Shown: piece by piece, positions 1 to 50,789 of the stretch | Layout: every line of letters begins with the position of its first letter | Numbering within the stretch: position 1 is the stretch's first letter | Assembly: GCA_021613535.1 (NCBI GenBank) | Contig: CP075494.1 | Coordinates: forward strand, 186,001-250,000 | DNA: 64,000 nucleotides | Reading direction: 5' to 3' | Origin: Adineta vaga | Lineage: Eukaryota > Animalia > Rotifera | Program-made: the position numbers and the translations under genes | Notes under the pieces: generated by a model | The model's input: the letters and a program-made list of their open reading frames with translations, nothing else | What the model was told of the DNA's origin: nothing | Database searches by the model: none

Positions 1-1335
1 TATTAACTTTAAATAAATAATATTCTATAGAAAAAAAACATATTGAGGGTATGAGTATTAAAGTGATATGAAGAATCAAACGCAGATTCACACTTTGACC
101 CATCTCCTCAAGATGATTGGTATTTTAAATATAGATTGTCATCTATGAATTTAAATTGCACAATTATAGGATTGATATGTAATATTGATCATTTTTAAAA
201 TGTAGTGTGAAATAATATGCAACATATTCTCCGTGATTTTTGAAAATCAACCATATTAATGAGAAAATATCTCTGCAATTGAAATCAATAGTTCTTAAAT
301 ATTCCATAAAAGTACATAAAACTTGTTTAAATGGAAGTAAATCTCTTAAATATTCTCTTCGACTGTTCATAAACTAAAGCAAAGACTCTCTTCTAATGAT
401 TTTCGATCTACAACGCTATATCAAAAGGATCACCAAGATCTAGTAAAGTCAGATACCTAATACATTTAATACTATCGAGCACTAACAGTAATCCAAACAA
501 ACACGTAATCCAAACAAACACAAAATACAAATCCTCAAAATGTGTCATATGAACCTTAAAATCATTCTTTATTGAATGTATTAAAAAATATACGCTGGAG
601 TAAATGAGTTCTGTATGTTCGCTCATTTAATGTAAAAGAATTAAATCGGCTTACATAATTACCTGGTTTTTTCCTTTCTTTCCTTTGGATTGTGCACAAG
701 TATATTGAAGATATAATGTATTCAATCTATTTTCTTTTCTGAAGTAACAAAAAATAGTGATACTAAGTCTTTTTCTTCCTACGTCTTATTCATATAGTAA
801 TACGATGTAATAAATGAACAAACTAAGACTGCGATGAAGATATAGTGATGATTAATTTCAATCTTGAGAGTGTGTGCATTTAAAGTTCTGACGCATATCC
901 ACGTTTCTTAGAATTCTGAAAACTATCAAAAACAACCACTGGTCAAGACTTAAGATATAAAATTTGTTTACCATAATTATCTATATTATGTAGATTGAAG
1001 CAATTGTCTATCTTAAATGACATGATCCGCGTCATTCTTATTCAATACTCTGATGAAAATAATTCCGCTATAAATAATTGTATCATCATAATATAAACTG
1101 CCGTTTAGAATGTATATGAATTTGATCTCTTTTCAGCAGAGAAAAATAAATCTATTAATAATTTACACTGACATACCTCTGTCATGAAATGTTGTCTTTA
1201 AATGACTCATCCAAAGTGTACGAGAGCGAACAGAAAGTATTTTTACATACGCTCGTTCAGTTTTTTTTCTTCCTATATAAGAATGCGGTGTGTTTCATAG
1301 TGCACAACTATTACAGTAAACAAGACATCGTCAGA

Positions 1336-2241
1336 ATGACAGAGCAAAAACGTGTAATTTTAGTGACTGGAGCAAATAAAGGTATTGGTTTGGAAGTTGT
1401 AAAGAAATTACTTGAACAATCTTCTTTAAATACCAATGATATTATTCTTCTTGGTAGTCGAGATATGAAACGTGGTCAAGATGCAATTCAACAATTAGGT
1501 TCTCCACCAAATGTACATTTATTACAATTGGATACATCATCAAAAGAAAGTATTATTGCTGCTACCAATGAAATTAAACAAAAATATAATGGTCATTTAG
1601 ATATATTAATTAATAATGCTGCAATTGCACCAAGAGAGAATACAATTGAAGCAACACGAACAGCATTTGCAACTAATTATTATGGTATTAAAATGCTTAA
1701 TGAACATTTAATTCCATTAATAGGTAAGAATGGTCGTATTGTTAATGTTGCTAGTACTGTTGGTCAAATGGTAGCATATCTTTTTTCAAAAGAACTTCAA
1801 GAAAAATATACATCACCAACATTAACAACACAAGAACTCGATGGTATTGTTGAAGATTTCCTTTCAGCATTCGAATCTCACAATTCTGAACGTATTGGAT
1901 ATTCTTCTGAAATACCTTTTCCAGCCTATACTATTTCAAAAACTGCATTGATTGCTCTTACTCGAAGTCAAGCACGTAAATATTTTAATGATAAATCTGT
2001 ATTTATTTATGCTGTATGTCCTGGTTTTTGTGCCACTGATCTTAATAATCATGCTGATGGAGCTCGATCAGCATCACTTGGTGCCGATTCTATTCTCTAT
2101 CTGATTAATACACCAACAAATGAATTAGAAAATGGTGCATTCTATCTAGATGGTAAAAAACTACCACAAATCTGTGACAATGAAGCTCAAGTAAAAGCAT
2201 TTGTCGAACACTCTAAGACATTATTGAAATCAAAACAATAA
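1336..2241 (+). CDS. Short-chain dehydrogenase/reductase, carbonyl-reductase-like
   Basis: TGANKGIG Rossmann motif, NNAA, YTISK catalytic YxxxK, VCPGFCATDL. Likely start is MTEQK at 1336, downstream of TATATAA (~1275). Confidence 0.92.
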   Translation: MTEQKRVILVTGANKGIGLEVVKKLLEQSSLNTNDIILLGSRDMKRGQDAIQQLGSPPNVHLLQLDTSSKESIIAATNEIKQKYNGHLDILINNAAIAPRENTIEATRTAFATNYYGIKMLNEHLIPLIGKNGRIVNVASTVGQMVAYLFSKELQEKYTSPTLTTQELDGIVEDFLSAFESHNSERIGYSSEIPFPAYTISKTALIALTRSQARKYFNDKSVFIYAVCPGFCATDLNNHADGARSASLGADSILYLINTPTNELENGAFYLDGKKLPQICDNEAQVKAFVEHSKTLLKSKQ

Positions 2242-29119: not shown

Positions 29120-29196
29120 ATCTTGAGGGTGGGTGTGGGTGTGAAAGAAGAGGAGATACCCACAACCTCATCCACACCCACACCCACCCTCAAGAT
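29120..29196. repeat. Best-preserved copy of the telomere-repeat hairpin family (~25 copies in window)
   Basis: ATCTTGAGGGTGGGTGTGGGTGTG-AAAGAAGAGGAG...-CACACCCACACCCACCCTCAAGAT. Confidence 0.9.
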
Positions 29197-31076: not shown

Positions 31077-31361
31077 AATAACACGGAGAAAATATAATTT
31101 TTTTAAATAAAAATAAAATCTTTAATAAAATATGACTGTTGAATTTATATTCACATTATATTAGAAATTAAAACTGAATATTAATATTCAAAATAAATTA
31201 TTTCATGTTCTTCTATACAAACGGCATTTTATTTGTTTATTAATTCATAAGAAATTAAATAACTACTCAAAAAGTACCAATCAATACACTATAAGGTAGT
31301 AAACATCAGGGTTGCCAGATTGTCTGAAAAGTCAGGAAAGTGTCTGAATTTTGGAGGTTTT

Positions 31362-31526
31362 TCAACTATACGAAAAAGAAAGCAGTTGGTTATTTCCTGT
31401 TCGAAAGAAATAACCGATTTATCAAAGAATAAAATGTTTGAGATAGAAAAGAAAAAAAAAGAGTTGTTTTGTTTTATGTAGTTTATTGACTAGTTTCTGT
31501 CAAGTTAAGACTTGACTTCATCAGAA
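31362..31526 (-). repeat. 3' pseudo-LTR (165 bp), directly repeated at 35644-35808 and inverted at 40070-40234
   Basis: Match read by eye from TCAACTATACG to CATCAGAA. Confidence 0.92.
31488..31524 (-). ncRNA. Minimal hammerhead ribozyme core, copy 1
   Basis: CUGAUGA - stem II GUCAAGU/ACUUGAC - GAAA - palindromic ACUAGU - GUC cleavage triplet. Confidence 0.85.
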
Positions 31527-31729
31527 CTTATATACAAAAAAACTCTAATTAAATTATAAATACAAGAAAAAACTTGGAATGAAAAAATGCAAAGAACTAT
31601 GCTAGGGCTTGAAGAGCCCATGACAATGCAAACTAGGGCTAGATGAGCCCTTAGTTTTTCAAACTCTGTTTTAATTTCTTCTTCTTACTTAGGAAACGAG
31701 AAGAAGATGTGGGTAGGTTTGCTTGCAAA

Positions 31730-33586
31730 TTATTTTAGGAATACTTTATTTGGTTTTTTATGTACTAAATAATCTAGAAGATTGTTTAATCTTCTAGAAC
31801 CAACGATAGGTTTCCTATTACAAATTGGTGTATCCGAGAAACATTCATTCCAGAGTTTATGAAAACTGGTCGTAAATTCGCTCATACCTTTACAAAAGGA
31901 AAAATGGCACATTATGTTGACCTCGAAATCAATTTTCTTTTCTGTTTTTTCATTTCTTTTTTCATTTAGAAAAGTTTTTCTTATATGCAAGAAATTCTTT
32001 TGTGTCGGAACTGCACAATGAAAAGCTTGCGAGACTCTTTCAAATTGTTTCAAAATGAAATTAAGTGGATATTGGTTTAAGAGCAATGACATGCATATAT
32101 GCGCTTCTTCTAGTTTGTAATCATCATAACTTGAAGAGTATCTTATTGCTCGAACGAGAGCAACGAAAGGAATATTCCTTTTTATATGTTGTGCATGTAC
32201 ACTAGAGAAAGGGAGAAAATATAATTCATGTGATGGTTTATGATAAACTTTTGATATTAGTTTTCCTCCTCTGTTCTCAAATTCTACGTCAAGATATTGA
32301 ACGTTCTTTCCTATTGATTCAGAAAAAACGATATTTTTATCAATTCTATTCCAGAATTTAACAAGACCTTTTAATATATCTTCATGTATGTTTGACATGA
32401 TGAATAAGTCATCGATATATCTATAGTATAATGAGAACGTTCTATTAGCCCATTTTGCAATGGGACGTTCAACGAAATACATATATGTATTAGCTATGGT
32501 GAGGGTGAGTGGCGAACCCATGGCGCCTCCTCTTATCTGTTTGTAATATGACCCGTCAAAATAGAAATAATTATTAGTTATAACAAATCTGGTAAGAGCT
32601 AAGATAATTTCTTTCTTAATGCCGTCAATTTGTTTTAGATTATGTTCTTCTAATAATCTTTTTATAGCTACCACTCCCCCTTCTTGCGGGATCATTGTGT
32701 AAAGATCAGTCACATCCATAGATATGAATGTAGTTGATGATGTGAGATAATTATCTGACCATCTTTCAACTGACTTAATCAATTGAGTACCGTTTTCAAT
32801 TGCTATATCAAGAGCTAATTGATTGAATAACGGTCTTAATAAATCATCTAACCATTTAGATATACCTATAGTTGGTGATTTCATTCCAGCTACTATGGGT
32901 CTTAATGGTGTATTAGGTTTATGTGCTTTTGGCAAAAAATACAGGTGAGCTAATTCTGCTTCTTCCCGTTGTACTTTTAGGTTTTCATAATGTTTCTGGG
33001 TTATATGTTTATTAACCCATAGAGCATATAGAAATTCATTTGTACGTTTAACTAATGCATCAAGTGGGTTTATTCCTTCTAAATCTTGATATGCATCTGT
33101 TTTTATCATATATGTTCGAGCTTTAAATATATGATCATCAGTTGTACCGAGATGAAAAACTTTTGATTTATCTGTCTTTCTGATGATTGTTTTCGTTGCT
33201 TCGAACTTTCTTTCTAGATTTTTGATTATCTTTAAATGATCTGATGGAAGATATTTATTATGACAATTAGTCAATATCTGTGTTAATGAATCTTTAAAGA
33301 ATTCAAAACGTTGAACAGGTAATATCCATCCATGTTCACCAAAAATCTTATTTATTTTTCTCATAACCACATCTATCTCATTATTCATACGTTTATGTGC
33401 AAGATGAGGGTTATCAGGTATATATTTAGGGCCGAGTTTTAATAGATCATATTCGACCCTATCTAAATTTATGTTAGTTTCATTAATTATATTTGGAGCG
33501 TGAAATCCTTTCGTAATACTGGATTCATTTTTCGTGCTTCCTGTATTTCGAAGGGCGTCTCTTTGACGCTGCGTTCGTCTAAAAAA
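31730..33586 (-). CDS. PLE/Athena reverse transcriptase; N-terminus entered by predicted -1 frameshift
   Basis: LLKLGPKYIP, LYFLPKAHKP-PLRPIV, DVTDLYT, GAMGSPL, YRYIDD, YLDV, VYHKP. The frame is open upstream of the annotated ATG (33388) as far as the slippery site. Confidence 0.93.
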   Translation of the reverse strand, partial: FFRRTQRQRDALRNTGSTKNESSITKGFHAPNIINETNINLDRVEYDLLKLGPKYIPDNPHLAHKRMNNEIDVVMRKINKIFGEHGWILPVQRFEFFKDSLTQILTNCHNKYLPSDHLKIIKNLERKFEATKTIIRKTDKSKVFHLGTTDDHIFKARTYMIKTDAYQDLEGINPLDALVKRTNEFLYALWVNKHITQKHYENLKVQREEAELAHLYFLPKAHKPNTPLRPIVAGMKSPTIGISKWLDDLLRPLFNQLALDIAIENGTQLIKSVERWSDNYLTSSTTFISMDVTDLYTMIPQEGGVVAIKRLLEEHNLKQIDGIKKEIILALTRFVITNNYFYFDGSYYKQIRGGAMGSPLTLTIANTYMYFVERPIAKWANRTFSLYYRYIDDLFIMSNIHEDILKGLVKFWNRIDKNIVFSESIGKNVQYLDVEFENRGGKLISKVYHKPSHELYFLPFSSVHAQHIKRNIPFVALVRAIRYSSSYDDYKLEEAHICMSLLLNQYPLNFILKQFERVSQAFHCAVPTQKNFLHIRKTFLNEKRNEKTEKKIDFEVNIMCHFSFCKGMSEFTTSFHKLWNECFSDTPICNRKPIVGSRRLNNLLDYLVHKKPNKVFLK

Positions 33587-35532
33587 AGAACTTCTCGTTC
33601 TATTTCTAGTAATGCTTTTTTGTACGAAATTTCAACATATTCTGTAAACATTTCAGAACCTTTTGATTCAATTATATCTATTTGTGTTCGTACTCTTTGC
33701 GTGAAACAACCATTATTATCAGCTTCATCACCGTCATTTTTATCGATTGCCGCCGCCTGCTGTATTTGTGTCAGTGGCACATCATATGTATCTGGTGGAA
33801 AATCTCTCAGAAGTTTATCTAATCTTTCATTCTGAAAATCATATTCACCTTTAGCAACTTTCAAATATAATTCCGTTGCTTTTATACGAAAATCTTTCGA
33901 TAATTCTTCTATACTTTTCTTATTCTTTAGGATTTCTTCAGCTGATAGTGAAGATTCATCCATGGGAAGAGAAAAATCATACTGTGGTAAGTTTTTCGGT
34001 ATAATATCATTTGAAATATGAGCTGCTACCAATTCAAAGTTTTTCTTCTTTTTGTGGTAGGCTTTCAAGGCTGGTCTACAGAAGGTATTGGCATATATTT
34101 TCTGTTGTTCAGTTGCCATATTTTCAAATGCCTTCAATGCAGTCCATTCATCTTTTTCTAAAGATGCACGACGTATTCTTATATTGTTCATTTTCGTTAA
34201 TCCTATTGTAGATTCTTTAATATAGTCAAGCATTAGATCATGTACTCTTTTAGGAGCATTGGCTATAGCTTGTATATTTTGATTAGAAGAGAATTTGTCG
34301 ATGGTTCGTGTTATGATGTCATTTGCATCGATACATGCTGATGTAAAATGTGATATTTTATTTTCACATAACGATAAATTTCTTTTATCATCACGGGTAT
34401 GTGTTTTATCGACAATTTCTTTGGCCCAATGATCTTTATTCTTTCCTAGTTCATAGAATTGTTGCCAGACCTGGGCTTCATAATGATTATATACCCATTT
34501 ATCGTATGTCGGAAGAGTGTCCTTCGCATACTTGTATATTTCATTGAAGGAATCTTTTAAATCTTTCATTTTTCTGTCATTTAGTTTGACTTTTAGATAT
34601 GAAAGAATTTTATAATCTTGTAAATATAATTTCAATTTACGTTTATCTGTAGGTGATCGTGATGATACTTCATCACTACTACGATCTCTGTCATTTACAG
34701 TAAGAAAAAGATCGTCACTTTTATGTTGATTTATTCTTATTCTATCTGTATTAACTTCGTTTGTTGTGTTAGTTTGTTTAGCAACAACAATATTATCTTT
34801 TCGCATATTCGAAGTAGGTTTTCTTTTTTTAGGTGATTTATTTTTATTCATGGCACGTATTTGATTATTATTATCTGCTTCAGCCTCTGAATTATCTGCT
34901 TCTGTATCATCATCATTTTCTGACAAAATAATGAAACGATTATCATTTAATCGACCTAATTCTTCATTACGTTTATTAGGTAAGAATGCTCGATTTCTCT
35001 GACGTCTTTCTCTTCTTCGAAGAGTGTTGAGATGAGCTTTGTCTGATGTTTTCTTTTTCTTGGATTGTACATCATTATTTTTATTATTATTCATATTCTT
35101 CTGATGAATGGGCATCGTCTTTGATTGCCTACTATTATCAGGTAAATCTATTTGATTTAAATTTTGCCATGTTTCAGGCATGAAATCAACTAAACGTCTT
35201 TGCTTTGGTGTATTACGTTGACGATTGTTTTTGAAATTTCCACGTCGTGGAGTTACTGATCGTTTTCGATTATCATATGATGGCTTTCCATCCTTTCTAC
35301 TATATTTAGACTGATCCTTATTCCATGATGATGAACCATCAAATGGATAGAAAAATGGTGGTGGTGCTAATGGAAAGGGCATTTGCTGCCCATTAACCAT
35401 ACCTCCCGACCAATTCATTGGTATATTATTTGGACCAAATACAGATGATTGAAAACCATAACCATGTTTTTGTGGTTGTTGAATACCATATGGATAACCA
35501 ATTGGATATTGTTGATCATATGTTGGAAACAT
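33487..35532 (-). CDS. ORF1 of the Athena-like element: P/Q/G/Y-rich N-terminus, basic region, helical coiled-coil C-terminus
   Basis: ~680-aa ORF directly upstream of and overlapping the RT frame; first ATG at 35532. Confidence 0.85.
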   Translation of the reverse strand: MFPTYDQQYPIGYPYGIQQPQKHGYGFQSSVFGPNNIPMNWSGGMVNGQQMPFPLAPPPFFYPFDGSSSWNKDQSKYSRKDGKPSYDNRKRSVTPRRGNFKNNRQRNTPKQRRLVDFMPETWQNLNQIDLPDNSRQSKTMPIHQKNMNNNKNNDVQSKKKKTSDKAHLNTLRRRERRQRNRAFLPNKRNEELGRLNDNRFIILSENDDDTEADNSEAEADNNNQIRAMNKNKSPKKRKPTSNMRKDNIVVAKQTNTTNEVNTDRIRINQHKSDDLFLTVNDRDRSSDEVSSRSPTDKRKLKLYLQDYKILSYLKVKLNDRKMKDLKDSFNEIYKYAKDTLPTYDKWVYNHYEAQVWQQFYELGKNKDHWAKEIVDKTHTRDDKRNLSLCENKISHFTSACIDANDIITRTIDKFSSNQNIQAIANAPKRVHDLMLDYIKESTIGLTKMNNIRIRRASLEKDEWTALKAFENMATEQQKIYANTFCRPALKAYHKKKKNFELVAAHISNDIIPKNLPQYDFSLPMDESSLSAEEILKNKKSIEELSKDFRIKATELYLKVAKGEYDFQNERLDKLLRDFPPDTYDVPLTQIQQAAAIDKNDGDEADNNGCFTQRVRTQIDIIESKGSEMFTEYVEISYKKALLEIEREVLFLDERSVKETPFEIQEARKMNPVLRKDFTLQI

Positions 35533-35608
35533 ATTCTCACTATTCTCAATAGTATTATTCAAGATAAAAGAAGAACTACTTTCGAGCTACTTTAAGATCT
35601 TACGACTC

Positions 35609-35646
35609 TATATAAAATAGCTAACTAACGACAAACTAAATACTCA
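35609..35646 (+). promoter_or_regulatory. Putative antisense TATA/Inr promoter at the pLTR boundary
   Basis: TATATAAAA at 35609-35617, ~30 nt before TACTCAACT where the pLTR begins. Confidence 0.45.
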
Positions 35647-35769
35647 ACTATACGAAAAAGAAAGCAGTTGGTTATTTCCTGTTCGAAAGAAATAACCGAT
35701 TTATCAAAGAATAAAATGTTTGAGATAGAAAAGAAAAAAAAAGAGTTGTTTTGTTTTATGTAGTTTATT

Positions 35770-35806
35770 GACTAGTTTCTGTCAAGTTAAGACTTGACTT
35801 CATCAG
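35770..35806 (-). ncRNA. Minimal hammerhead ribozyme core, copy 2 (upstream of ORF1)
   Basis: Same core as copy 1. Confidence 0.85.
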
Positions 35807-36153
35807 AATCTAGAAGAAAAAGCAATGGTTTAGAAAAAAAGTAAAGAATTTTATTAAAAACAAATGTTTATAAGATCGGTTCTCGTAAGGGAAGCTATAT
35901 ATGTTTATCTTATCCTGTATACCAGGAAGATCTTATGTGAATTGTTGAATTTCATTCAGTATTTATAGTCCCCGATACTGATCCTGATTGGTATTTTAGA
36001 AGAGATATTAATGGATCAATCAGATGTCTAGTCTTAAACGACTAATAGGCGTCGAAGATAGACTATTCAAGGTGTTAAAAATGTTCAAAGGTTATTTGGT
36101 AAAACTTTGATGTAAAAAAAGGAAAATTTCAAGAAAAAAAACATTAATAAAAG

Positions 36154-36229
36154 TGGTACCGGATGCGAGATTCGAACTCGCCGTCATCGGTGTGACACAC
36201 CATTGATCCACTCAATCGTCTAGTACGGT
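36154..36229 (-). tRNA. tRNA-like sequence, 76 nt, GTC at anticodon positions, encoded CCA, imperfect stems
   Basis: U8, A9, G10, A14, U33, A37 in register; perfect T-arm GCGAG-TTCGAAT-CTCGC; A73-CCA, then C-TTTT. Mismatches in acceptor (2), D (2) and anticodon (1) stems. Confidence 0.7.
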
Positions 36230-36544
36230 TATACACGCATTCAAAATCTCACTTAATTATTGAAAGCATTAATCTATGTTATAGGATAGAATACTTCTTA
36301 AGTTTTCTTTGATAGAATGGAGAAAACATTTGATTGAACAGTTAAGGAATTTCTTAGAAGACCAATCATTTTGATCTGTGTGTGCTATATAAACAGACGA
36401 TTTCGTTGTAGTTGACACAAGATCATCACTTTCCTATAGACATCATCTCGAATATCAGAGAATGTATTTAGGGAATTTTGAGCCTTGATTAACAGCATAG
36501 TCGTTGGAATGACTTTATTAATCCTTTTCTTTTTTTTACTCTAG

Positions 36545-37261
36545 ATGACACCCACTTCGAATGCTCAAAACTCTGCTGTCTCGGGCGATGATGGAGTAGC
36601 GCGTGATGTTGCTTTTCAGGCACTGAGTCCATTCTCCGGAGCCTTCTCTCCGACCGAAGTTCGAGAGCAACTGGTTGGTCCGATTCTAAATGGTCCACCA
36701 ACGTCCATTTGGAGGAGGACCACCATTTCGCATTCCAATGCTGACGGGTCCTTCTGTCTGTATGCTTGTGAGAGAACAGGAGAAGCCATGTGGGTACCTA
36801 GTGGCGAGCATTTTGTGGCCGACAGGTCACAAAGAGGGCAGTCAACTGGAACTGTCATGGACTACCTGTTCTCACGAAGTGGTCAGACAACTGGACCACG
36901 AGGCTATGGGTTTCATCATACTGGTCGTACGGTTTCTGGCGAGAACAGGAATGTTCATCGACCCAGAAATATTCATGCCAGTATGGTGGATAGATCGGAG
37001 AGAACCGGGTCTACTCGACTGATTCGCTTCAGTCCAATGGCTTGTCATCAACCATCTGCGGCCGGAATGGGGACCAGGAGAACGATAGCCCGGCGAGAAC
37101 GCAGAGAAAATGCACGCAGTTCTGGCGGTACAACAACACCACAACCACCAGTAACTCCATCAACCAATTCTACAACCACCACCACCGTTACCAATAACTC
37201 TATAAATGAAACAAGTCCACAACTCCAACAGCTGAATTTATCAGACGAAGAGGCGATGTGA
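36545..37261 (+). CDS. Antisense accessory ORF of the retroelement (238 aa, unknown; Thr-rich tail)
   Basis: GC-richer ORF preceded by TATATAAA (36386) and a polypyrimidine-AG acceptor directly before the ATG. Confidence 0.55.
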   Translation: MTPTSNAQNSAVSGDDGVARDVAFQALSPFSGAFSPTEVREQLVGPILNGPPTSIWRRTTISHSNADGSFCLYACERTGEAMWVPSGEHFVADRSQRGQSTGTVMDYLFSRSGQTTGPRGYGFHHTGRTVSGENRNVHRPRNIHASMVDRSERTGSTRLIRFSPMACHQPSAAGMGTRRTIARRERRENARSSGGTTTPQPPVTPSTNSTTTTTVTNNSINETSPQLQQLNLSDEEAM

Positions 37262-37632
37262 AGACGTGTGGCACATTAGGCCCTCGTCTTCCTCCCTCTT
37301 CCATATCTCTTGCTCTCATTCATTGTTCATTCGACACTTTCTAGTGTCAGGTTAGAGAGGCCCATATGGCCATCAACCCCCATTTCGTTTCATCAAATAC
37401 AACCGCATAATCACTAGAATTATCATCTAAATCACCAGCACATAATCCGAAAAATATTCTAAAAAGAAATACTCCACTAAAAGTAAAGAGAAATGATAAA
37501 CATTAGAAATCAAATACCTTTCGAAGAAAATTGAATAGAAAAGTTAATCTCTTACTTCACTCAAAAAGATCAGAAACCAACACAACTAATATATATCATA
37601 CAACTCATGCCACTAAAATATAACATCTTCCC

Positions 37633-38109
37633 ATGGATGAATCTTCACTATCAGCTGAAGAAATCCTAAAGAATAAGAAAAGTATAGAAGAATTATCGAA
37701 AGATTTTCGTATAAAAGCAACGGAATTATATTTGAAAGTTGCTAAAGGTGAATATGATTTTCAGAATGAAAGATTAGATAAACTTCTGAGAGATTTTCCA
37801 CCAGATACATATGATGTGCCACTGACACAAATACAGCAGGCGGCGGCAATCGATAAAAATGACGGTGATGAAGCTGATAATAATGGTTGTTTCACGCAAA
37901 GAGTACGAACACAAATAGATATAATTGAATCAAAAGGTTCTGAAATGTTTACAGAATATGTTGAAATTTCGTACAAAAAAGCATTACTAGAAATAGAACG
38001 AGAAGTTCTTTTTTTAGACGAACGCAGCGTCAAAGAGACGCCCTTCGAAATACAGGAAGCACGAAAAATGAATCCAGTATTACGAAAGGATTTCACGCTC
38101 CAAATATAA
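37633..38109 (+). pseudogene. 5'-truncated ORF1 in the inverted copy
   Basis: Identical to the last 158 aa of ORF1; identity starts abruptly at 37626. Confidence 0.85.
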
Positions 38110-39866
38110 TTAATGAAACTAACATAAATTTAGATAGGGTCGAATATGATCTATTAAAACTCGGCCCTAAATATATACCTGATAACCCTCATCTTGCACA
38201 TAAACGTATGAATAATGAGATAGATGTGGTTATGAGAAAAATAAATAAGATTTTTGGTGAACATGGATGGATATTACCTGTTCAACGTTTTGAATTCTTT
38301 AAAGATTCATTAACACAGATATTGACTAATTGTCATAATAAATATCTTCCATCAGATCATTTAAAGATAATCAAAAATCTAGAAAGAAAGTTCGAAGCAA
38401 CGAAAACAATCATCAGAAAGACAGATAAATCAAAAGTTTTTCATCTCGGTACAACTGATGATCATATATTTAAAGCTCGAACATATATGATAAAAACAGA
38501 TGCATATCAAGATTTAGAAGGAATAAACCCACTTGATGCATTAGTTAAACGTACAAATGAATTTCTATATGCTCTATGGGTTAATAAACATATAACCCAG
38601 AAACATTATGAAAACCTAAAAGTACAACGGGAAGAAGCAGAATTAGCTCACCTGTATTTTTTGCCAAAAGCACATAAACCTAATACACCATTAAGACCCA
38701 TAGTAGCTGGAATGAAATCACCAACTATAGGTATATCTAAATGGTTAGATGATTTATTAAGACCGTTATTCAATCAATTAGCTCTTGATATAGCAATTGA
38801 AAACGGTACTCAATTGATTAAGTCAGTTGAAAGATGGTCAGATAATTATCTCACATCATCAACTACATTCATATCTATGGATGTGACTGATCTTTACACA
38901 ATGATCCCGCAAGAAGGGGGAGTGGTAGCTATAAAAAGATTATTAGAAGAACATAATCTAAAACAAATTGACGGCATTAAGAAAGAAATTATCTTAGCTC
39001 TTACCAGATTTGTTATAACTAATAATTATTTCTATTTTGACGGGTCATATTACAAACAGATAAGAGGAGGCGCCATGGGTTCGCCACTCACCCTCACCAT
39101 AGCTAATACATATATGTATTTCGTTGAACGTCCCATTGCAAAATGGGCTAATAGAACGTTCTCATTATACTATAGATATATCGATGACTTATTCATCATG
39201 TCAAACATACATGAAGATATATTAAAAGGTCTTGTTAAATTCTGGAATAGAATTGATAAAAATATCGTTTTTTCTGAATCAATAGGAAAGAACGTTCAAT
39301 ATCTTGACGTAGAATTTGAGAACAGAGGAGGAAAACTAATATCAAAAGTTTATCATAAACCATCACATGAATTATATTTTCTCCCTTTCTCTAGTGTACA
39401 TGCACAACATATAAAAAGGAATATTCCTTTCGTTGCTCTCGTTCGAGCAATAAGATACTCTTCAAGTTATGATGATTACAAACTAGAAGAAGCGCATATA
39501 TGCATGTCATTGCTCTTAAACCAATATCCACTTAATTTCATTTTGAAACAATTTGAAAGAGTCTCGCAAGCTTTTCATTGTGCAGTTCCGACACAAAAGA
39601 ATTTCTTGCATATAAGAAAAACTTTTCTAAATGAAAAAAGAAATGAAAAAACAGAAAAGAAAATTGATTTCGAGGTCAACATAATGTGCCATTTTTCCTT
39701 TTGTAAAGGTATGAGCGAATTTACGACCAGTTTTCATAAACTCTGGAATGAATGTTTCTCGGATACACCAATTTGTAATAGGAAACCTATCGTTGGTTCT
39801 AGAAGATTAAACAATCTTCTAGATTATTTAGTACATAAAAAACCAAATAAAGTATTCCTAAAATAA
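38010..39866 (+). CDS. Second identical copy of the PLE reverse transcriptase
   Basis: Protein identical to that of 31730-33388; slippery heptamer at 38010-38016. Confidence 0.9.
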   Translation, partial: FFRRTQRQRDALRNTGSTKNESSITKGFHAPNIINETNINLDRVEYDLLKLGPKYIPDNPHLAHKRMNNEIDVVMRKINKIFGEHGWILPVQRFEFFKDSLTQILTNCHNKYLPSDHLKIIKNLERKFEATKTIIRKTDKSKVFHLGTTDDHIFKARTYMIKTDAYQDLEGINPLDALVKRTNEFLYALWVNKHITQKHYENLKVQREEAELAHLYFLPKAHKPNTPLRPIVAGMKSPTIGISKWLDDLLRPLFNQLALDIAIENGTQLIKSVERWSDNYLTSSTTFISMDVTDLYTMIPQEGGVVAIKRLLEEHNLKQIDGIKKEIILALTRFVITNNYFYFDGSYYKQIRGGAMGSPLTLTIANTYMYFVERPIAKWANRTFSLYYRYIDDLFIMSNIHEDILKGLVKFWNRIDKNIVFSESIGKNVQYLDVEFENRGGKLISKVYHKPSHELYFLPFSSVHAQHIKRNIPFVALVRAIRYSSSYDDYKLEEAHICMSLLLNQYPLNFILKQFERVSQAFHCAVPTQKNFLHIRKTFLNEKRNEKTEKKIDFEVNIMCHFSFCKGMSEFTTSFHKLWNECFSDTPICNRKPIVGSRRLNNLLDYLVHKKPNKVFLK

Positions 39867-40071
39867 TTTGCAAGCAAACCTACCCACATCTTCTTCTCGT
39901 TTCCTAAGTAAGAAGAAGAAATTAAAACAGAGTTTGAAAAACTAAGGGCTCATCTAGCCCTAGTTTGCATTGTCATGGGCTCTTCAAGCCCTAGCATAGT
40001 TCTTTGCATTTTTTCATTCCAAGTTTTTTCTTGTATTTATAATTTAATTAGAGTTTTTTTGTATATAAGTT

Positions 40072-40108
40072 CTGATGAAGTCAAGTCTTAACTTGACAGA
40101 AACTAGTC
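40072..40108 (+). ncRNA. Minimal hammerhead ribozyme core, copy 3
   Basis: CTGATGAAGTCAAGTCTTAACTTGACAGAAACTAGTC; predicted cleavage after C40108. Confidence 0.85.
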
Positions 40109-40313
40109 AATAAACTACATAAAACAAAACAACTCTTTTTTTTTCTTTTCTATCTCAAACATTTTATTCTTTGATAAATCGGTTATTTCTTTCGAACAGG
40201 AAATAACCAACTGCTTTCTTTTTCGTATAGTTGAATAATCTCCTTTTCTTTTGAATTCTAATCTTTTCTATATATTACAGCTTTTTTAAATGAAATTAAA
40301 GACTATATCATAA

Positions 40314-40439: not shown

Positions 40440-41622
40440 TAATATTCAATCGATGCTATGTAAACTTCAACTGTTTTTGATGAAATCTCATAACTTGTAT
40501 AATAATATTGTGATTTATTTTTGTATTTTTTTGTGAACCAGTTTTTGTTTAGCGAAAGAATCCGACACTAAGTGTCTTCATTTGTTCTTTCTTGTTACTT
40601 AAACAGTATACTCATTGTATTTTTTTTTATCATAGTGGAATATCTTTGAAAATAAATTATGAATTAATAAACCACAGCTCAATAGAGAATTTTATGAAGA
40701 CCATAAAATACAATTATCGTCAGATTCTTTCAAAAAATACCCTTTCTGATTTTTTTCTGATTTCGTCAAAAAATCTTCTGACGACTTTCTGATTTTGAAA
40801 AAAAAATTTCTGATTTTTCATTTTTTCATCTGGCAACCCTGGTAAACATATCGTTCCATTCTTCGTAATTCTGTCTTATATGCTCAAAGTATGGAAATAG
40901 TGAATCTAAAAGAATCTTTTTACTAGAAAAAGAAGTTCGTTTTGAAGAAAGATAAAGACAATATTCTTACTTGTTACTATGTTTGCTCATTTTCTGATGA
41001 AAAACTTTGAATGTAAAATATTTCTTTGTTCTATGAGTTCTCGCGTGAAAAATAGAAAAACGTGGAAAAATGCCAGTTTTCATTCTATTATTTTTTAAAA
41101 ATATATTATTCAATCACGCGAATATTTTTCTCTTTAAAAATATAACTTCTTCTTTTCCCGTTGATTGAATATAGTTATAAAAAGCTGAAATGTGTGTGTG
41201 TGAGGGTGTGGGTGGTTGTGGGTGTGGGTGTGATTGCTTCATGTTAGTTTACACCCACACCCACCCACACTCTCAAGATGCGTGTCAACAATAAGGTGCG
41301 TAGAAAAATACATGTGGATGTGGTATCATTTTTCGTTCTTTGAATTGAAGGTGCATGAGTTGCAAAAGTGGCGTTGTATGTCTCTCATAGCCGTTGTTCT
41401 GTTATTCTCTCTTGACTCATATTGATCTTTCTCGCTCAAGAGCTGAGAAAAGAAAAGAAAAGAGAAGAATGATCTGATAACTGCCCCACTCTTTGACTCA
41501 TTGTATTCCATTCTCACCAGCAGCCGGAAAAAACGAACATCTCACGAGAGAGAAAAACTACCAACCTGTATAATAACGCGATAAAAGACATTATTACCTT
41601 CACTTTACTTTTGTGACCTGCA

Positions 41623-42702
41623 ATGGCTTTTCTCCAACGACCTTGGCAACGCGCAAAGGGAATTGAATGGATGTGGCAATCGAACGAGAATCCATTCGAT
41701 CTATCGCAAAAATCAGAATGGAAGAGTTATTCAGATGTTGAAACTATAGTCATAGAAGAAGCGTATCAGAAGAAACAGTCAGCAGTGTTGCTCGATCAAT
41801 ATCATATTAATTTAGAACAACTTATTCAAGTTTCGAATATCGATGAGAAAAAACAACGGCCCGTCAAACGAATTGCTCTGAGTACTGCACAGTGGAGGGT
41901 AAGAAAAGAACGCTTTCTTGCCGATCCTATTGAACCTTCTAAACCGTTTTCTACAACCCGTTCGCATGATTTCCTTGTCGAAACAGTGGCATATTATAAC
42001 CTTTGGTACACCGATGAATCTCGTTTGCTCATAGAAAAAGCAGCAGAAGGACTTACCGTCGAAGGCAAACTGCTTGGTACAGAATGGGAAGGACGACAAA
42101 TGGCAGAACTGTTACTCCTCTACAAAGATTATTCTCGGGAAGAAATTGTACAAATGTGTGCCTATCTGTATTCGTTTGACTCATTTCTCTATCGAAAACT
42201 AAATGAAATCATGCGTCTTATTGAAGACAATTGCTATGAACATGTGTGGAAGAGTAAAGTACCCACTTTGGGTCCTTTCGCTTATCTGCTGAACTGTTTG
42301 GCTACAGGAATAAAGTATTCAATAGATTTACCGGTAGAATCCATGACAGTCTATCGTGGATGCAACCTGTCTGCGGAAGCAATTGAAAAATTCAAAGCAT
42401 TTCATACGGAACACCAGGCACATAATTATCATACATCATGGATTTCATTTTTATCGTTTACATCGACCAGCCGAAGTAGAGAAAAAGCAGAATTTATAGG
42501 TGGTAATGCACTCTTCATAATTAAAATTTGTACTCATTACGAAGGTTGTGATATTTCTCCATACTCGCGATTTGATGAAGAAGAGTTTCTTCTCATACCA
42601 ACATTCTCATTCTTGATTGTTTCATGTAATTACGACGAGCATGTTCATAAATGGATTATTGGTCTTGAATCAGCTAATTCTTTTCATAATTCGAGATGTT
42701 AA
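41623..42702 (+). CDS. WWE-domain mono-ADP-ribosyltransferase (R-S-E type)
   Basis: WMWQ...WKSYSD...IEEAY WWE domain; LYRKLN, VYRG, FTSTS, EEEFLL. Confidence 0.88.
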   Translation: MAFLQRPWQRAKGIEWMWQSNENPFDLSQKSEWKSYSDVETIVIEEAYQKKQSAVLLDQYHINLEQLIQVSNIDEKKQRPVKRIALSTAQWRVRKERFLADPIEPSKPFSTTRSHDFLVETVAYYNLWYTDESRLLIEKAAEGLTVEGKLLGTEWEGRQMAELLLLYKDYSREEIVQMCAYLYSFDSFLYRKLNEIMRLIEDNCYEHVWKSKVPTLGPFAYLLNCLATGIKYSIDLPVESMTVYRGCNLSAEAIEKFKAFHTEHQAHNYHTSWISFLSFTSTSRSREKAEFIGGNALFIIKICTHYEGCDISPYSRFDEEEFLLIPTFSFLIVSCNYDEHVHKWIIGLESANSFHNSRC

Positions 42703-45192: not shown

Positions 45193-48100
45193 TTATGTTA
45201 TTGAACATTGACCTAGCCAGCCTGTTCTAGTTGCGTGACTGGATGATGTTGTATTTGTCGTAGCTGGTAACGTCCTTCTTGTAGCTGGTAGAGTATTGTT
45301 TATGATTGGTGGAGTGTTAGGTTGATTACCATAGGTAATAATTGCCACAGGTAAATTATAAGAATAAGACCAATCTTTTGGATTATTAACCACATGACAG
45401 AAGCCAACTTTAGTATAAACTTGAGTACAGTATAAAATAAAAGTAACAAGCATATGCCTGGTTCCATTTATTGTGTCTGCATTACAATAACCATGAGATA
45501 TAGCTGCAGTAACACCAAAATACTCGCCTTCGCCGTGTAGTTGACGCTGGCGAAGACGAGGATCGAATCCATCGGTACAAATTGCATCTATTGATGTTGG
45601 ATCTGTTCCATGAAAGGCAAAGAAACCATCAGCTAAATCAGGTACTGGTTCATTTTTGAGAACTTTTACACCTTCATAGAAACGATCCAATGACAAACAC
45701 TTTTCGATAAGATGTAAATTGGGTTTAAAATTAATGATCGGTGGTAAATCAGGTGTCCAGTGTTTGCGTACATATCTTTCGCTCTCAAGAAACAGATTTT
45801 GAAGAAATCCTCCCATTTTACTGACCTGACTCTTTCGTTCAGCACATGTTCGTCCTTCATGAAGATCGTCATTAATTATATGACAAAGAGCGCAGACACG
45901 TTCTCCACAATTCACACATGTCTGATAACCTTTACTGCTTGTGACTAATCCATCACATTTGTTATTTGGACAAAATATTCGATCATCAACATGAGTTAAT
46001 AAATAATGTTGAAGCGATTGTTTGCATAATTGAGTGATTTCGTAAGGTTTATAAATCTCTCGTAAATCAGTAATATCGATGTTTGCCTTGCAATTAGTAT
46101 CAGGGCATTTCAATGGTAGAGTTTGTGCTAATAGAGTTGGAGTACAATGACAATAAACATGTCCACAAATACGGAATCTTCTGAAAGTGGTTGTTCGTCC
46201 ACAAAATGAACATTGTCGATTACTTTCGTCACAATTATTGTTAGCTGTGATTTTGGAGATCAACTGTTTCAATTCTTTTAAACATTCATCGGCAATAGTA
46301 ACTGATATTTGTGGTAGGCAGTAGATTACAATAGACTTTATCTTACGCATATAGACAATATAACAATCCTTTTCTAACCATTTCTGTGCCAGTTGATCCA
46401 ATTTTGTGCTTGCTGATTTGTGGGGTCCAAAAAAGTTAGCTAATTTTGAATTTAATTCGTAGACATGAAATCGACTGTCGAACTCATCTGAATAATCGGC
46501 AACTTTTCGCATGAGTTGACCTTGCTGAATTTGAGGACCTCTAATTTCGATCGTTGAATGCAATTCGTCTTTTTCTTCACCTGCAATATCTAGATTTAAT
46601 TCATGAGACCACATTTGAATTAATTTTTGTCGGAACAGTTCATCGAATAAATACTTTTGTCGATAGTCACTAATTTTGATAATCAAAGGTCGTGTAAGTT
46701 GAGCAAGCATGGCTGCTGCTGCAGCTGTTTTTGGTGGAGATGCACCACTGAAGACACAGCGAATAGCATTTCTTTCTAAGTCATATTGCTGGACTTTGGT
46801 ACCAAACTGTTTACAAATATTATACATCCATTGATCAAAATCGGGATAGATATCCGGCTGTAAGACTGTTACTATGGCTGAACTTTCCACTTGCCATGTC
46901 GGTTCTTTGTTAGGAAGGATATTTTCGAAAAGTTGCAATGCCATATCTTTATTTACGGCTGTTATACGAAAAGTTTGTGAAGATGTTGATTTACTCTCAA
47001 CGTTTCTAATCTTTGGTAAAATGGTCGTTGCTTGTAGCATGCGCGTTTTTGGATGGCGAATTTGGATTTTAATCCGTTGCTGACAGAGACCTGATCTAAG
47101 AATATTGCATGCATCTTGCTTTTCCTTTTCACTGACGAAAAATATTCGAGCAGACGAAGATCCCGTATCATCTATATTTCCTCGTTCAAGACTAACTTTC
47201 ACTGGATGAATTGGTCTAATTGCATTACGTATGAATGTTTCATCAGTATCTAATGGTATATCGCTTAAACAAATACTCGATTGAGACTGGCGAATTTTCT
47301 TGCCACATTCTCGGCAGTCGACTATGTATGAAGAAAATGTATCTGCTACTTGTTCAGCACTTATTACGTGACTCTTAGGTCGCGTACTTATGGTTAATTG
47401 ACGGCCCCACATATTTTTCGTATTCATATATGTCCTTGTGGTTGATGAAAAGAGTACTGAATTTTTTGGATGAATATAATATGATGGTATACGTTCTGAA
47501 GCTCGTTGAAAAGCCTCAATGGAATTAAAAATAATGTCAAATGGTAATGCCTCATATTCAACATTATTATTTCTGCCTGTACGCCTGTGGCTGGGTAGAA
47601 AATTATTCTTTTTAATATCTTGACGGTGGATGTCAAATTTTCTTTGAAGCCAATAATAAAGTTCGTCTATAGTATCACATGGTACATGTTGAAGATCGAG
47701 CCGCAATTGATCGTCTATCTTTTCAATGTTTGTACATATAAGACCACTTTTGAATGAAGCGCAAATGGGACCACAATGAAGTCTTTGTGTCTTCTCTAAT
47801 AATTCTGAGCGAACTTTTTCTAAGATTGATTGTAAAATTGGTTTAACAGTAGGCTCATCTGAATCCATACCCCAAATATTTAACTGACAGATAGTTTGAT
47901 CGTATTCATATACTACCCATTTGTACCAGGGTTGCTTACGATATTCATTGAATTTTTGACGTATTTTACAATTGACTAACCAACCTATGTTTTTTTCACT
48001 GAAGACAATACATATTGGTACAGAATTTAAATCCTGAGATGGTACTGGATGCAATACATCGACAAGATAATCACCTGCTGGCAGTTGAGTAATCGACATC

Positions 48101-50789
48101 GATACAAAATATTGATGACCATGATCGTGAAGTCGTTGCATAAATACGCTAGTATTAGTGATTTGTGCACATATATTACTATTGATTAGACGCACACCTG
48201 CGGCCGGTAGATGACAGACAAGAAGATGACCCAAATGTTCTGGAAAAAGCTCATAAAGATATTTTCCGATTATATCTCGTTCGTTATCCGTGGAAGATAT
48301 GTCCCTACCTACGGCTAGTTTCCATTTTAGATTCGTAATCGTTTGTATGTAAAATAGAACCGAATTATCAATGATTTGAAGGATTTTATTGTTTAGACCG
48401 TTCCTATTAGCATATTGTGCTCGACATGTTTTGCAAGCATCGAAATATTTTGAAACTGATTTATCGCATCTCAAACACTTTTTAGCTATTTGGTCGATAG
48501 TACCTGTCTCCTTCCAACGCTGATATACGTCACATAAATGAAACAAATCACTATCATATTGATGAGCACTCAGAGCCACGAGAGCACGAGCTTCATCTTT
48601 GGTTTCTTTTGTAACTCCACCCATGTAAAAAAGCGAACCTGGTGCTGACAGAATAGCAACGATTGTAGCAGTGCGAGTTAAAAGATACTTGCCACCAATA
48701 CCAGTATAGGCTTTGGCCATCAATGCACTAAAACGAGGATCAAGTGATAATTCGGAAAAGAGTTTGCCACGCATTGTTAACGTTTTATTACCATCAACGC
48801 AAGATAAACGAGTAAGTAAATCAAATGTATTCGTGATTAAATTCAAATCAGGTTGGTCAAGAAATGGAAAGGTTTTTGGATCGAGACCTAACCGTAATAT
48901 TTGAAGAATAGTTAAATCTAGGAAAGAACGAAGAATTTCAGGTTCAATATGTTCTCGTTTGAAGTCATTTTTATTGTAGAGACGTACACAATGACCATTA
49001 ATAGTTCGTCCTGCTCGACCTTTTCGTTGCTGTGCTGACGAAGATGAAATTTGTACAGTTTCTATAACTGTTAGACGACGTTTTATATCAAAACGAGCTT
49101 CTTTAGCCAGACCAGAATCGATTACGAGACGAACATTGTTTATAGTGAGCGACGTTTCCGCAACGTTAGTACAAAAAACGACCATTCGTCGTTTCCCATT
49201 TTCATCATCAAAGTTCAATACTTTATCTTGTTCTTCAAGTGACATCGATCCATAGAGTGGCAAAGCTACACAATCTTTTGGAATATCATGGCTAAAAAAT
49301 TTTAATGCTTGTTCAATATCACGTTGTCCTTGTAGAAAGACAAGTGTATGTCCTTCAAACTTGGGATAAAGCCGTCGTAATGTTGGAACAACATGTTTTT
49401 CGATTAAATTCTGATTACTACAGTTACTGGGTGGTGGAAGATATTCTTCAGATACATTATAGAGACGACCGGGTACTGTTAGTAGTTGACTCAATGAACA
49501 ATCGAAGAACTGCAAGAATTGAGTTGGATCGATTGTTGCCGAAGAAACAACAACGAAGAAGTCTTGCGAACGTTTCTTCAATAATGATTTGGCAATACCA
49601 AGCACTACATCTGTATTTAAGGTACGATCATGAGCTTCATCTACAATTAATACACGTACTTTGCTCAAATTTGGATCGAATTGAGTTTCACGAATGAGAG
49701 CAGCATCGGTCATAAACATGATACGAGTACCAGATACATAAGTATTTCTTTCATGACCTCCTCGTATTCGATAACCTACGGAATGACCTTCAGATTCACC
49801 ATCATACTCATTAGCTACTCGACGAGCTAATGACATAGCAGCAACAGCACGTGGCTGAGTACAAACAATAAGACCATCTCGGAAATATTCAGCTGCATAT
49901 TGAGGTAATTGAGTGCTCTTACCACTACTTGTTTCGGCTCTTACAATCAATACCCTTTCAGTCTTCAATCGTCGACAGAATTCAGTACATGAATTAAAAA
50001 TAGGTAAGTTTGCTCTCATGCGTTCTTTCATACGTTGTTCTAATGACCTCAATTTCTGTCGATCAGAATATGCATTTCCCAAAACTTCAGTATTTACTGA
50101 ACCAATATCGTCACATTGCATTTCATTATCAATTGAGTTCTGACGAAGTGAATCATTAACTGATGATTGGCGAGCTACCTTCCTTGGTGGTGATGTACTT
50201 GATCGTTGACTTCTTTTCTCATTATGTGAACGCATACTGTATCGTCTATGTTCATAGTCTTTCCCAGTAGAATTCCTCTGCACGTACTTGTTGGATATTC
50301 GCTCATTGTTTGTTGCAACAGAAGGATTTTCTAAAACAATAACAAATTAAAAATGAAATTCTATATGTTGATCATTTCTCAATTTAGGATACGACAGAAA
50401 ATGTCCTCCTGTCTCATAAGAGTTGATAGTATATATTTACGAGAATGATAATTTCTTTTGAGTTGTCGATCACGTGAATAATTAGATTCTGTATGCCAAA
50501 CTGAACTTGAGCTGTTGATCAGTTCTATATCAAAGTTCTCAGTGACTTTACATTTGATTCGATGTTTACTGTAGTACATTTTATTCCATTGAGAAACAAA
50601 CGTTCTCGCTTTTTGTTCATTATCAAATTTAATAATCCATGCGTAGCAACCATTTTGATCAGGTTGCTCATTTGGTATGATGACTCGATCTTTGACAACA
50701 TCAAAGTGTTTAGATATGTCCAAAATAGACACATTTTTCGGCAGATCGGTGATTTTTACACACCACCGATGTGTAGTTGTTTGTGCCAT
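45193..50789 (-). CDS. RRM + DEAH RNA helicase + RRM/KH-like + RING-IBR (RBR-like) + PARP catalytic domain protein, 2 exons
   Basis: SGKSTQ, TQPR, DEAH, SAT, TNVAETSLTI, QRKGRAGR; CGHVYC and FCPNNKC zinc fingers; FHGT...HGEGEYFG PARP motifs; upstream RRM exon 50440-50789. Confidence 0.88.

Follow-up and report, generated by a model that had tools for sequence, protein, structure and literature searches.

A conserved, non-decoding tRNA-like module bordering the ORF-A unit of Athena-type retroelements in bdelloid rotifers: a candidate Pol III-type gene

Here we analyse a tRNA-like module carried by a retroelement of the bdelloid rotifer Adineta vaga. The module lies in a stretch of 64,000 nt of contig CP075494.1 (positions 186,001 to 250,000), hereafter the window, to which all coordinates refer unless another contig is named. 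An earlier description made from the letters alone, the sequence-only reading, had presented it as a CCA-ending tRNA mimic with an aspartate anticodon, and had proposed several roles for it. Positions inside the module are given in raw numbering, raw position n corresponding to window position 36230 - n, and genome searches were run against a 101-Mb assembly of six contigs.

The module sits in the unique spacer between two inverted arms (Table 1). A pseudo-long terminal repeat (pLTR) lies downstream of it, at a distance of 333 nt and in the same orientation, and belongs to a pair that flanks open reading frame 1 (ORF1) and the reverse transcriptase (RT) gene on the minus strand. On the other side, ORF-A begins 316 nt away, and transcription of the module would run away from it. 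The placement proposed by the sequence-only reading, upstream of and co-oriented with the pLTR/hammerhead-ORF1-RT unit of the window, is thus confirmed. A hammerhead core is legible in the pLTR (CTGATGA, a 7-bp hairpin, then GAAAC), and Rfam calls no hammerhead there even at E <= 10. Segment S, which in canonical relatives is the leader immediately 5' of ORF-A, faces the pLTR-ORF1 unit in the window. The arm junction at 37626 recurs in an independent contig (L056, 90% identical), so misassembly of this genome alone does not account for the head-to-head arrangement.

Table 1. Features of the locus and copies of the module in the A. vaga genome (window coordinates, raw positions or contig positions).
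Feature	Coordinates	Strand	Basis or remark
tRNA-like module, as first delimited	36154-36229	-	sequence read, 76 nt; window copy, R2 score 98.6 bits
Conserved fold core, raw 4-74	36156-36226	-	RNAalifold consensus and pair counts
Outer stem	raw 4-8/70-74 and 10-12/66-68		
D-like stem, 7-nt loop	raw 14-17/25-28		
Short (3-bp) anticodon-like stem	raw 29-31/39-41		
T-arm	raw 49-53/61-65		
A-box-like segment, raw 12-23	36207-36218	-	TGGTTGAATTGG in most relatives, fits TRGYNNARNNGG
B-box-like segment inside T-arm, raw 52-62, AGTTCGAATCT	36168-36178	-	T-loop identity and compensatory changes 49-65, 50-64, 52-62
T-runs, Pol III terminator-like (T4 36149-36152, T8 36134-36141)	36134-36152	-	directly 3' of the module
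Segment S	35870-36046	-	BLAST of upstream regions
Island U, conserved, 44 nt, in ORF-A upstream region	36323-36366	+	retained also in relatives without the module
ORF-A, 238 aa, GC-rich	36545-37261	+	divergent from the module; leads the three-ORF unit of canonical relatives
Upstream pLTR copy	35644-35821	-	178-nt direct repeat with 31362-31539; putative hammerhead core ~35775-35812
ORF1, 691 aa	33487-35562	-	no Pfam domain
Downstream pLTR copy	31362-31539	-	178-nt direct repeat with 35644-35821
RT ORF, 552 aa, one per arm	31730-33388 (-), 38208-39866 (+)		RVT_1 only, endonuclease domain absent
Inverted arms, 2618 bp, 100% complementary	31353-33970 and 37626-40243 (+)		each with ORF1 C-terminus, RT and pLTR
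C2 copy of the module	C2:187709-187794		R2 score 80.3 bits
C3 copy of the module, decayed	C3:2015804-2015889		R2 score 57.5 bits; T-stem mismatches, ORF-A absent beside it

With RVT_1 as its only domain and no GIY-YIG endonuclease, the RT has the composition of the endonuclease-less Athena type. We found 579 homologues, typically of 550-600 aa; most are metagenome sequences, and every one with an organism name comes from Adineta or Rotaria. On this sequence evidence the RT family is judged to be large and bdelloid-specific, and the element an Athena-type, endonuclease-less Penelope-like element. Many of the homologues, from several rotifer species, are only 450-475 aa long, their first residue corresponding to about residue 89 of the 552-aa window RT, a recurrence that suggests an exon boundary, an alternative start or a frameshift site. 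Published accounts of Penelope-like elements and Terminons describe hammerheads and reverse-complement telomeric repeats (PMC8557442, PMC6431247). The element resembles the Athena elements and Terminons of these accounts in its rotifer-specific RT lacking an endonuclease, its pLTR with a putative hammerhead core, the short telomeric tracts all around it, and its modular ORFs separated by repeats that bear this core. A tRNA-like module is absent from both accounts; this comparison stops short of the primary Athena and Terminon descriptions, so the novelty of the module is provisional.

Reading the sequence confirms what was reported of the module itself: its 76 nt on the minus strand, a perfect T-arm (GCGAG / TTCGAAT / CTCGC), GTC at positions 34-36, a 3' CCA, and the T4 that follows. 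It had also been said to fit canonical tRNA numbering exactly, which does not hold. The Rfam alignment in the canonical register leaves five stem mismatches in the window copy (two in the acceptor, two in the D stem and one in the anticodon stem), and the RF00005 score of 21.6 bits, obtained in a permissive scan, is below the gathering score of 29, so nothing is called at the module at gathering thresholds. Likewise, ARAGORN with default settings makes no tRNA call in the 64-kb window, and with relaxed thresholds it calls the module tRNA-Asp(gtc). The minimum free energy is no better than that of dinucleotide shuffles (z = 0.07), and no convincing inverted repeats flank the module in the window. 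A scan for bacterial-type promoters and terminators was empty, such a scan being irrelevant for a eukaryote.

Taken alone, the module is therefore a borderline case, and its homologous copies settle that the resemblance exceeds chance. A chance resemblance or an assembly artefact could be argued from the sub-threshold scores and shuffle-like fold energy of the single sequence, and from the position of the locus within a perfect palindrome, where doubts about the assembly may arise. Homologues with the same neighbours in independent assemblies and species effectively refute this explanation, and up to 93% of the words of the window are found in DNA sequencing runs; its probability is close to nil.

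Homologues of the module were found at 14 loci, representing 11 distinct sequences, from A. vaga (three), Adineta ricciae and environmental rotifer contigs. A pattern scan of metagenomes yielded a single additional locus, L078. At E <= 1 Rfam had no match at the A. ricciae or L056 loci, its tRNA model being too weak for these copies. The A. ricciae contig L054 is colinear with window positions 31375-37397 at 84% identity, through RT, ORF1, pLTR, spacer, module and ORF-A, and L056 shares window positions 35647-37856, including the arm junction. Wherever the module is detected and ORF-A is present, the two are on opposite strands, with the module placed upstream, about 300-760 nt from the ORF-A start codon. 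This is the case in the window, L056, L054/L055, L208, L078, L059-L061, L068, L062/L063 and the C2 copy, and position and orientation relative to ORF-A are constant even among families whose ORF-A proteins are only 49-61% identical.

The gene order in distant relatives (L059, L057, L058 and L077) is ORF-A, pLTR/hammerhead, ORF1, RT and pLTR, all on one strand, so that the three-ORF unit opens with ORF-A. The window lineage has its ORF-A block turned around with respect to pLTR-ORF1-RT, and it is because of this inversion that the module is co-oriented with the RT there. Canonical relatives carry the module antisense to all three genes, ORF-A, ORF1 and RT. The proposal that the module is an RNase P/Z signal cutting the multi-ORF transcript cannot for this reason be general.

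Between lineages, the regions upstream of ORF-A can otherwise be aligned only in the short islands S and U. Homology mostly ends beyond the T-run, while the ORF-A side retains both islands. What follows the T-run differs from one lineage to another: S, pLTR and ORF1 in the window group, an RT copy from residue 89 that is 75% identical to the window RT in L068, an RT fragment at the C2 copy, and unrelated DNA in L059 and L062. From these differing sequences we take the module to mark the outside limit of the ORF-A-led unit, a place where another RT-bearing copy is often joined head to head. The L068 RT (756-2171, minus strand) begins about 70 nt past the module, and a MITE-like (miniature inverted-repeat transposable element-like) palindromic insertion rich in TAGAACC/GGTTC (2354-2595) adjoins the module in the same contig. 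A similar TAGAACC/GGTTC-type motif stands past the module in L059 (~990-1058) and again in L060, both of which are without a T-run; the insertion could be a small element with a preference for sites near Pol III-type genes. In A. ricciae, L062/L063 (4576-5983) holds a solo module with ORF-A and a pLTR fragment between large host-like genes, with neither ORF1 nor RT nearby, which indicates that the ORF-A cassette can exist apart from the RT unit.

Fold tests were performed on an alignment of the 11 distinct copies (A7), with the fold taken from the RNAalifold consensus. The conserved fold is tRNA-shaped, with its outer-stem register moved by five positions, so that paired positions sum to 78 and not 73. 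It leaves 91.8% of cells paired (11 sequences, 20 pairs including the short anticodon-like stem), or 94.8% without that stem (9 sequences, 17 pairs in three helices), versus 69.3% in the canonical register (11 copies; acceptor 58%, D 61%, anticodon 67%, T 93%) and 28-48% in slid controls of the shifted fold. Seven pairs covary, and on four of five measures none of 500 shuffles reaches the observed value. The compensatory changes include 49-65 (G-C to A-T in the A. ricciae copies), 52-62 (A-T to G-C in L068), 50-64 (C-G to T-A in the C2 copy), 14-28 (A-T versus G-C), 8-70 (T-A to C-G in L056) and 10-68 (G-C to A-T in L208). The sister copies and covariation on which the sequence-only reading had made its case depend are thus both present, the covariation supporting the shifted register.

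The same register is the one picked by the Rfam tRNA model in L059 (RF00005, 17.9 bits, again under the gathering score of 29) and by relaxed ARAGORN in L059, L060 and L068; default ARAGORN makes no call on any of the 11 copies. In this register the first C of the window CCA pairs with G4. A CCA is confined to the window copy and its closest relative L056, the other copies ending in CTA, CAA, CGA, CTT and so on, and relaxed ARAGORN reads the anticodon of individual copies as gtc, gtt, gta, tac or cat. The two features taken earlier as defining, the aspartate anticodon and the encoded CCA, are accidents of the window copy, and the idea of a CCA-ending tRNA mimic should not be built on. Judged from the aligned copies, the conserved feature is a non-decoding, Pol III-gene-like, tRNA-shaped fold in the shifted register, and neither the anticodon nor the CCA. 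The family structure model built for it (R2) gives 94 bits on the sense strand and 14 bits on the antisense strand.

Type-2 promoters of RNA polymerase III (Pol III) have an A-box consensus. A-box- and B-box-like segments, recognised by pattern match only, stand at tRNA-like spacing in the module and are its most conserved parts, raw positions 52-62 reading AGTTCGAAYCT across copies. Mean pairwise identity over six lineages is 0.93 in the 5' outer stem, 0.90 in the T-loop and about 0.8 in the D and T stems, and falls to 0.54 in the anticodon region and 0.29 in the 5' flank. A run of at least four T begins 1-7 nt past the outer stem in 7 of the 10 copies examined, that is in five of seven lineages, for a background probability of about 0.08-0.12.

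These data bear on the view that the module is not a separate gene but a cis-acting structure at the terminus of the element RNA or of the first-strand cDNA, a tRNA-shaped handle that would serve RNase P/Z cleavage, RT recognition, self-priming or template switching where the ORF-A-led unit begins at its 5' side. Such a handle would agree with the location of the module at the unit edge, where homology between lineages ends, with its covarying stems, and with the same-orientation RT-bearing copy or fragment that starts shortly past it in the window, L068 and C2, at the head-to-head junction. The RT family is, moreover, related to telomerase (PMC8557442). However, the orientation of the module flips between lineages with respect to ORF1 and RT and is fixed only with respect to ORF-A, so that the canonical element RNA would carry its antisense strand, which scores far worse on R2. 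The CCA is not conserved, and a terminal structure requires neither a conserved T-run nor conserved A-box and B-box regions. We consider this explanation quite improbable.

Searching the genome with R2 returned only three copies (Table 1). Genuine host tRNAs score 25-28 bits on the same model, against 80-99 bits for intact copies, and BLAST and T-arm pattern searches found the 76-mer, the whole 1.8-kb spacer and the T-arm to be unique in the genome. A host SINE (short interspersed nuclear element) or dispersed repeat, whose head the module might have been, is thus rejected; the module is part of a retroelement. A recent derivation from host tRNA-Asp is rejected as well, since the 12 host tRNA-Asp(GTC) genes are canonical eukaryotic genes very different from the module. 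A bacterial tRNA origin fares no better: the D-arm 16-mer occurs in more than 120 prokaryotic contigs, at about chance level, and none of these occurrences is in a tRNA D-arm. The suggestion of a captured tRNA cDNA is unlikely for the window copy, because orthologous copies lack the CCA and a genomic-type T-run follows.

No public sequencing run for the window is recorded as RNA; contigs of two runs bear on transcription of the locus. In run X2, a contig of 151 nt (36152-36302) covers the module and 73 nt upstream and ends in the T-run, and further low-depth contigs span 36351-36550 and 36739-36889. In run X1, a small run of 2013, a contig of 672 nt (36545-37215) starts exactly at the ORF-A ATG and looks more like cDNA, an amplicon or a product derived from the coding sequence than random genomic coverage. 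Neither run gave a contig for ORF1. As transcript evidence for the module and ORF-A, these contigs are suggestive only.

We propose that the module is an old, tRNA-derived Pol III-type gene, carried by the element at the outer (5') margin of its ORF-A unit, a reading to which we give about an even chance (roughly 0.5). From the relationships among its copies, it appears to have been inherited for a long time within one lineage of bdelloid Athena-type retroelements. Among the roles suggested by the sequence-only reading, an element-encoded Pol III promoter or RNA is the best fit, as indicated by the conservation of the A-box and B-box regions and by the T-run in five of seven lineages; that Pol III transcribes it is the part that we infer. 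Selection would keep the A-box and B-box regions, the T-run terminator and an outer stem of 8-9 bp stacked on a canonical T-arm, together with a D-like arm whose loop has GG in most copies, while the anticodon arm, the identity of the anticodon and the 3' CCA would drift freely. TFIIIC and Pol III would bind the module and transcribe a non-decoding RNA of about 70-80 nt, which may be handled like a pre-tRNA by La and RNase P/Z.

Several observations weigh against this proposal. Upstream of ORF-A in L057, L058, L076, L077 and L207 no module was detected, and it is therefore dispensable for some relatives. The window copy departs from the A-box pattern TRGYNNARNNGG at two positions, and the T-run is missing in L059 and L060 and lies 17 nt away in L081. 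Among close relatives (window, L056 and L054), the module is about 87-90% conserved, no more than its flanks. The strand asymmetry, 10 G.U cells versus 5 A.C cells in favour of the sense strand, is weak. The sample is small and phylogenetically structured, and for this reason the shuffle tests overstate significance. Finally, the X1 and X2 pieces are low-depth Logan contigs that may be DNA, X2 being only guessed to be RNA.

Some of the same points would suit a slowly decaying relic, namely a tRNA gene acquired once by the ancestor of the lineage, carried by descent and now functionless. Decay and variability are seen in the anticodon arm, anticodon and CCA; several relatives have lost the module; the C3 copy has plainly degenerated; conservation among close relatives does not exceed that of the flanks; and the sample, small and structured, leaves room for the idea. 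A relic is harder to reconcile with the roughly 92% of cells that are still paired despite an identity of only 54-60% in the unpaired central region, with the seven pairs changed on both sides, and with a conservation that is concentrated in the stems, the A-box and B-box regions and the terminator next to flanks that cannot be aligned between lineages. We therefore hold it to be rather unlikely.

Compared with eukaryotic nuclear tRNA genes, the module has A-box- and B-box-like segments at the usual spacing with a T-run directly downstream, a perfect T-arm with a TTCGAAT/C loop, and a D-like arm with GG in the loop of most copies. It differs in being below gene-caller thresholds, in its outer stem of 8-9 bp with an internal mismatch and a single linker nucleotide before the D arm, in an anticodon region that is about 3 nt short, poorly paired and variable in anticodon, and in being unlike every host tRNA. 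Heads of tRNA-derived SINEs are comparable in that they are tRNA-derived, bear a Pol III promoter and are tied to retrotransposition. The module, in contrast, has no SINE body or tail, is present in three copies in the 101-Mb genome, and is embedded beside ORF-A of an autonomous element instead of being dispersed, the decayed C3 copy being without ORF-A.

Two kinds of role may be envisaged for the proposed Pol III-type gene. In cis, a boundary bound by Pol III and TFIIIC could keep the adjacent ORF-A promoter usable in subtelomeric chromatin. tRNA genes and extra TFIIIC (ETC) sites act as chromatin boundaries, a function that requires TFIIIC binding only. The likeness lies in B-box DNA beside a Pol II promoter, in a heterochromatin-prone subtelomere, at a fixed position relative to the protected gene; the difference is that pairs outside the A and B boxes covary in the module, which argues that an RNA product matters too. 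In trans, the small RNA itself could serve the element. Murine gammaherpesvirus 68 encodes tRNA-like genes, non-decoding Pol III units whose transcription and processing have been demonstrated and which are coupled to pre-miRNA hairpins located downstream. Both cases would present a selfish element with its own tRNA-shaped Pol III unit, non-decoding and with the acceptor/T-arm half kept. No downstream hairpin is conserved at the rotifer module, and its transcription is predicted where that of the viral units is demonstrated.

A more specific form of the trans role is a long shot. The telomerase-related Athena RT might take the acceptor/T-arm top half of the small RNA as a primer, a template-end tag or a ribonucleoprotein handle, and so might the ORF-A protein, which has an arginine-rich helix. 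The tRNA-like structures of the Mauriceville retroplasmid and of plant viruses, which replicases or RTs use and with which the genomic tag idea is associated, mark the 3' end of the template and terminate in CCA. The module shares with these tags a tRNA-shaped fold tied to a reverse-transcribing element with a telomerase-related RT. Unlike them, it is found at the 5' margin of the unit, runs antisense to the ORFs of canonical copies, and does not conserve the CCA.

At the protein level, ORF-A is 83% identical to its A. ricciae homologue and 41-63% identical to those of many further rotifer-derived contigs. The family (P0001-P0027) is conserved in bdelloid retroelements, with proteins of 240-290 aa that comprise an N-terminal core of about 70 aa (IWRRTTI...CLYACERTGEAMWVP...FVADR), an arginine-rich RRERRER helix, a low-complexity Pro/Thr region, and an acidic LNLSDEE motif at the C-terminus. 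A Pfam search of ORF-A found no domain, an ESM Atlas search gave no usable match, and the AlphaFold model is poor (mean predicted local distance difference test score of 51.7).

The telomeric dodecamer GTGGGTGTGGGT, with one mismatch allowed, has 51 matches in the window versus 0.04 expected, scattered and in both orientations. No telomeric tract directly abuts the ORF-A/ORF1/RT unit, the nearest being at 29129-29187 and 41202-41264, and an imperfect 69-nt telomeric inverted repeat (29124-29192 / 41201-41269) encloses the whole palindrome. Beyond it are a WWE and ADP-ribosyltransferase ORF of 359 aa (41623-42702, plus strand), with telomeric-repeat tracts on both sides, and, near that ORF, a helicase-IBR-PARP-like ORF of 1696 aa (45193-50283, minus strand). 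Both look like genes captured in a subtelomeric retroelement array.

No retroelements are closer to telomerase than the Penelope-like and Athena elements, and accounts of their RNA biology have until now been framed around hammerhead ribozymes and telomeric-repeat tails. If the proposed reading is true, a tRNA-derived Pol III-type module with a selected fold, passed down within an autonomous element, would give these elements a second class of structured RNA. Should its small RNA be used by the RT or the ORF-A protein, the module would be a living tRNA-like genomic tag working with a telomere-attaching reverse transcriptase.

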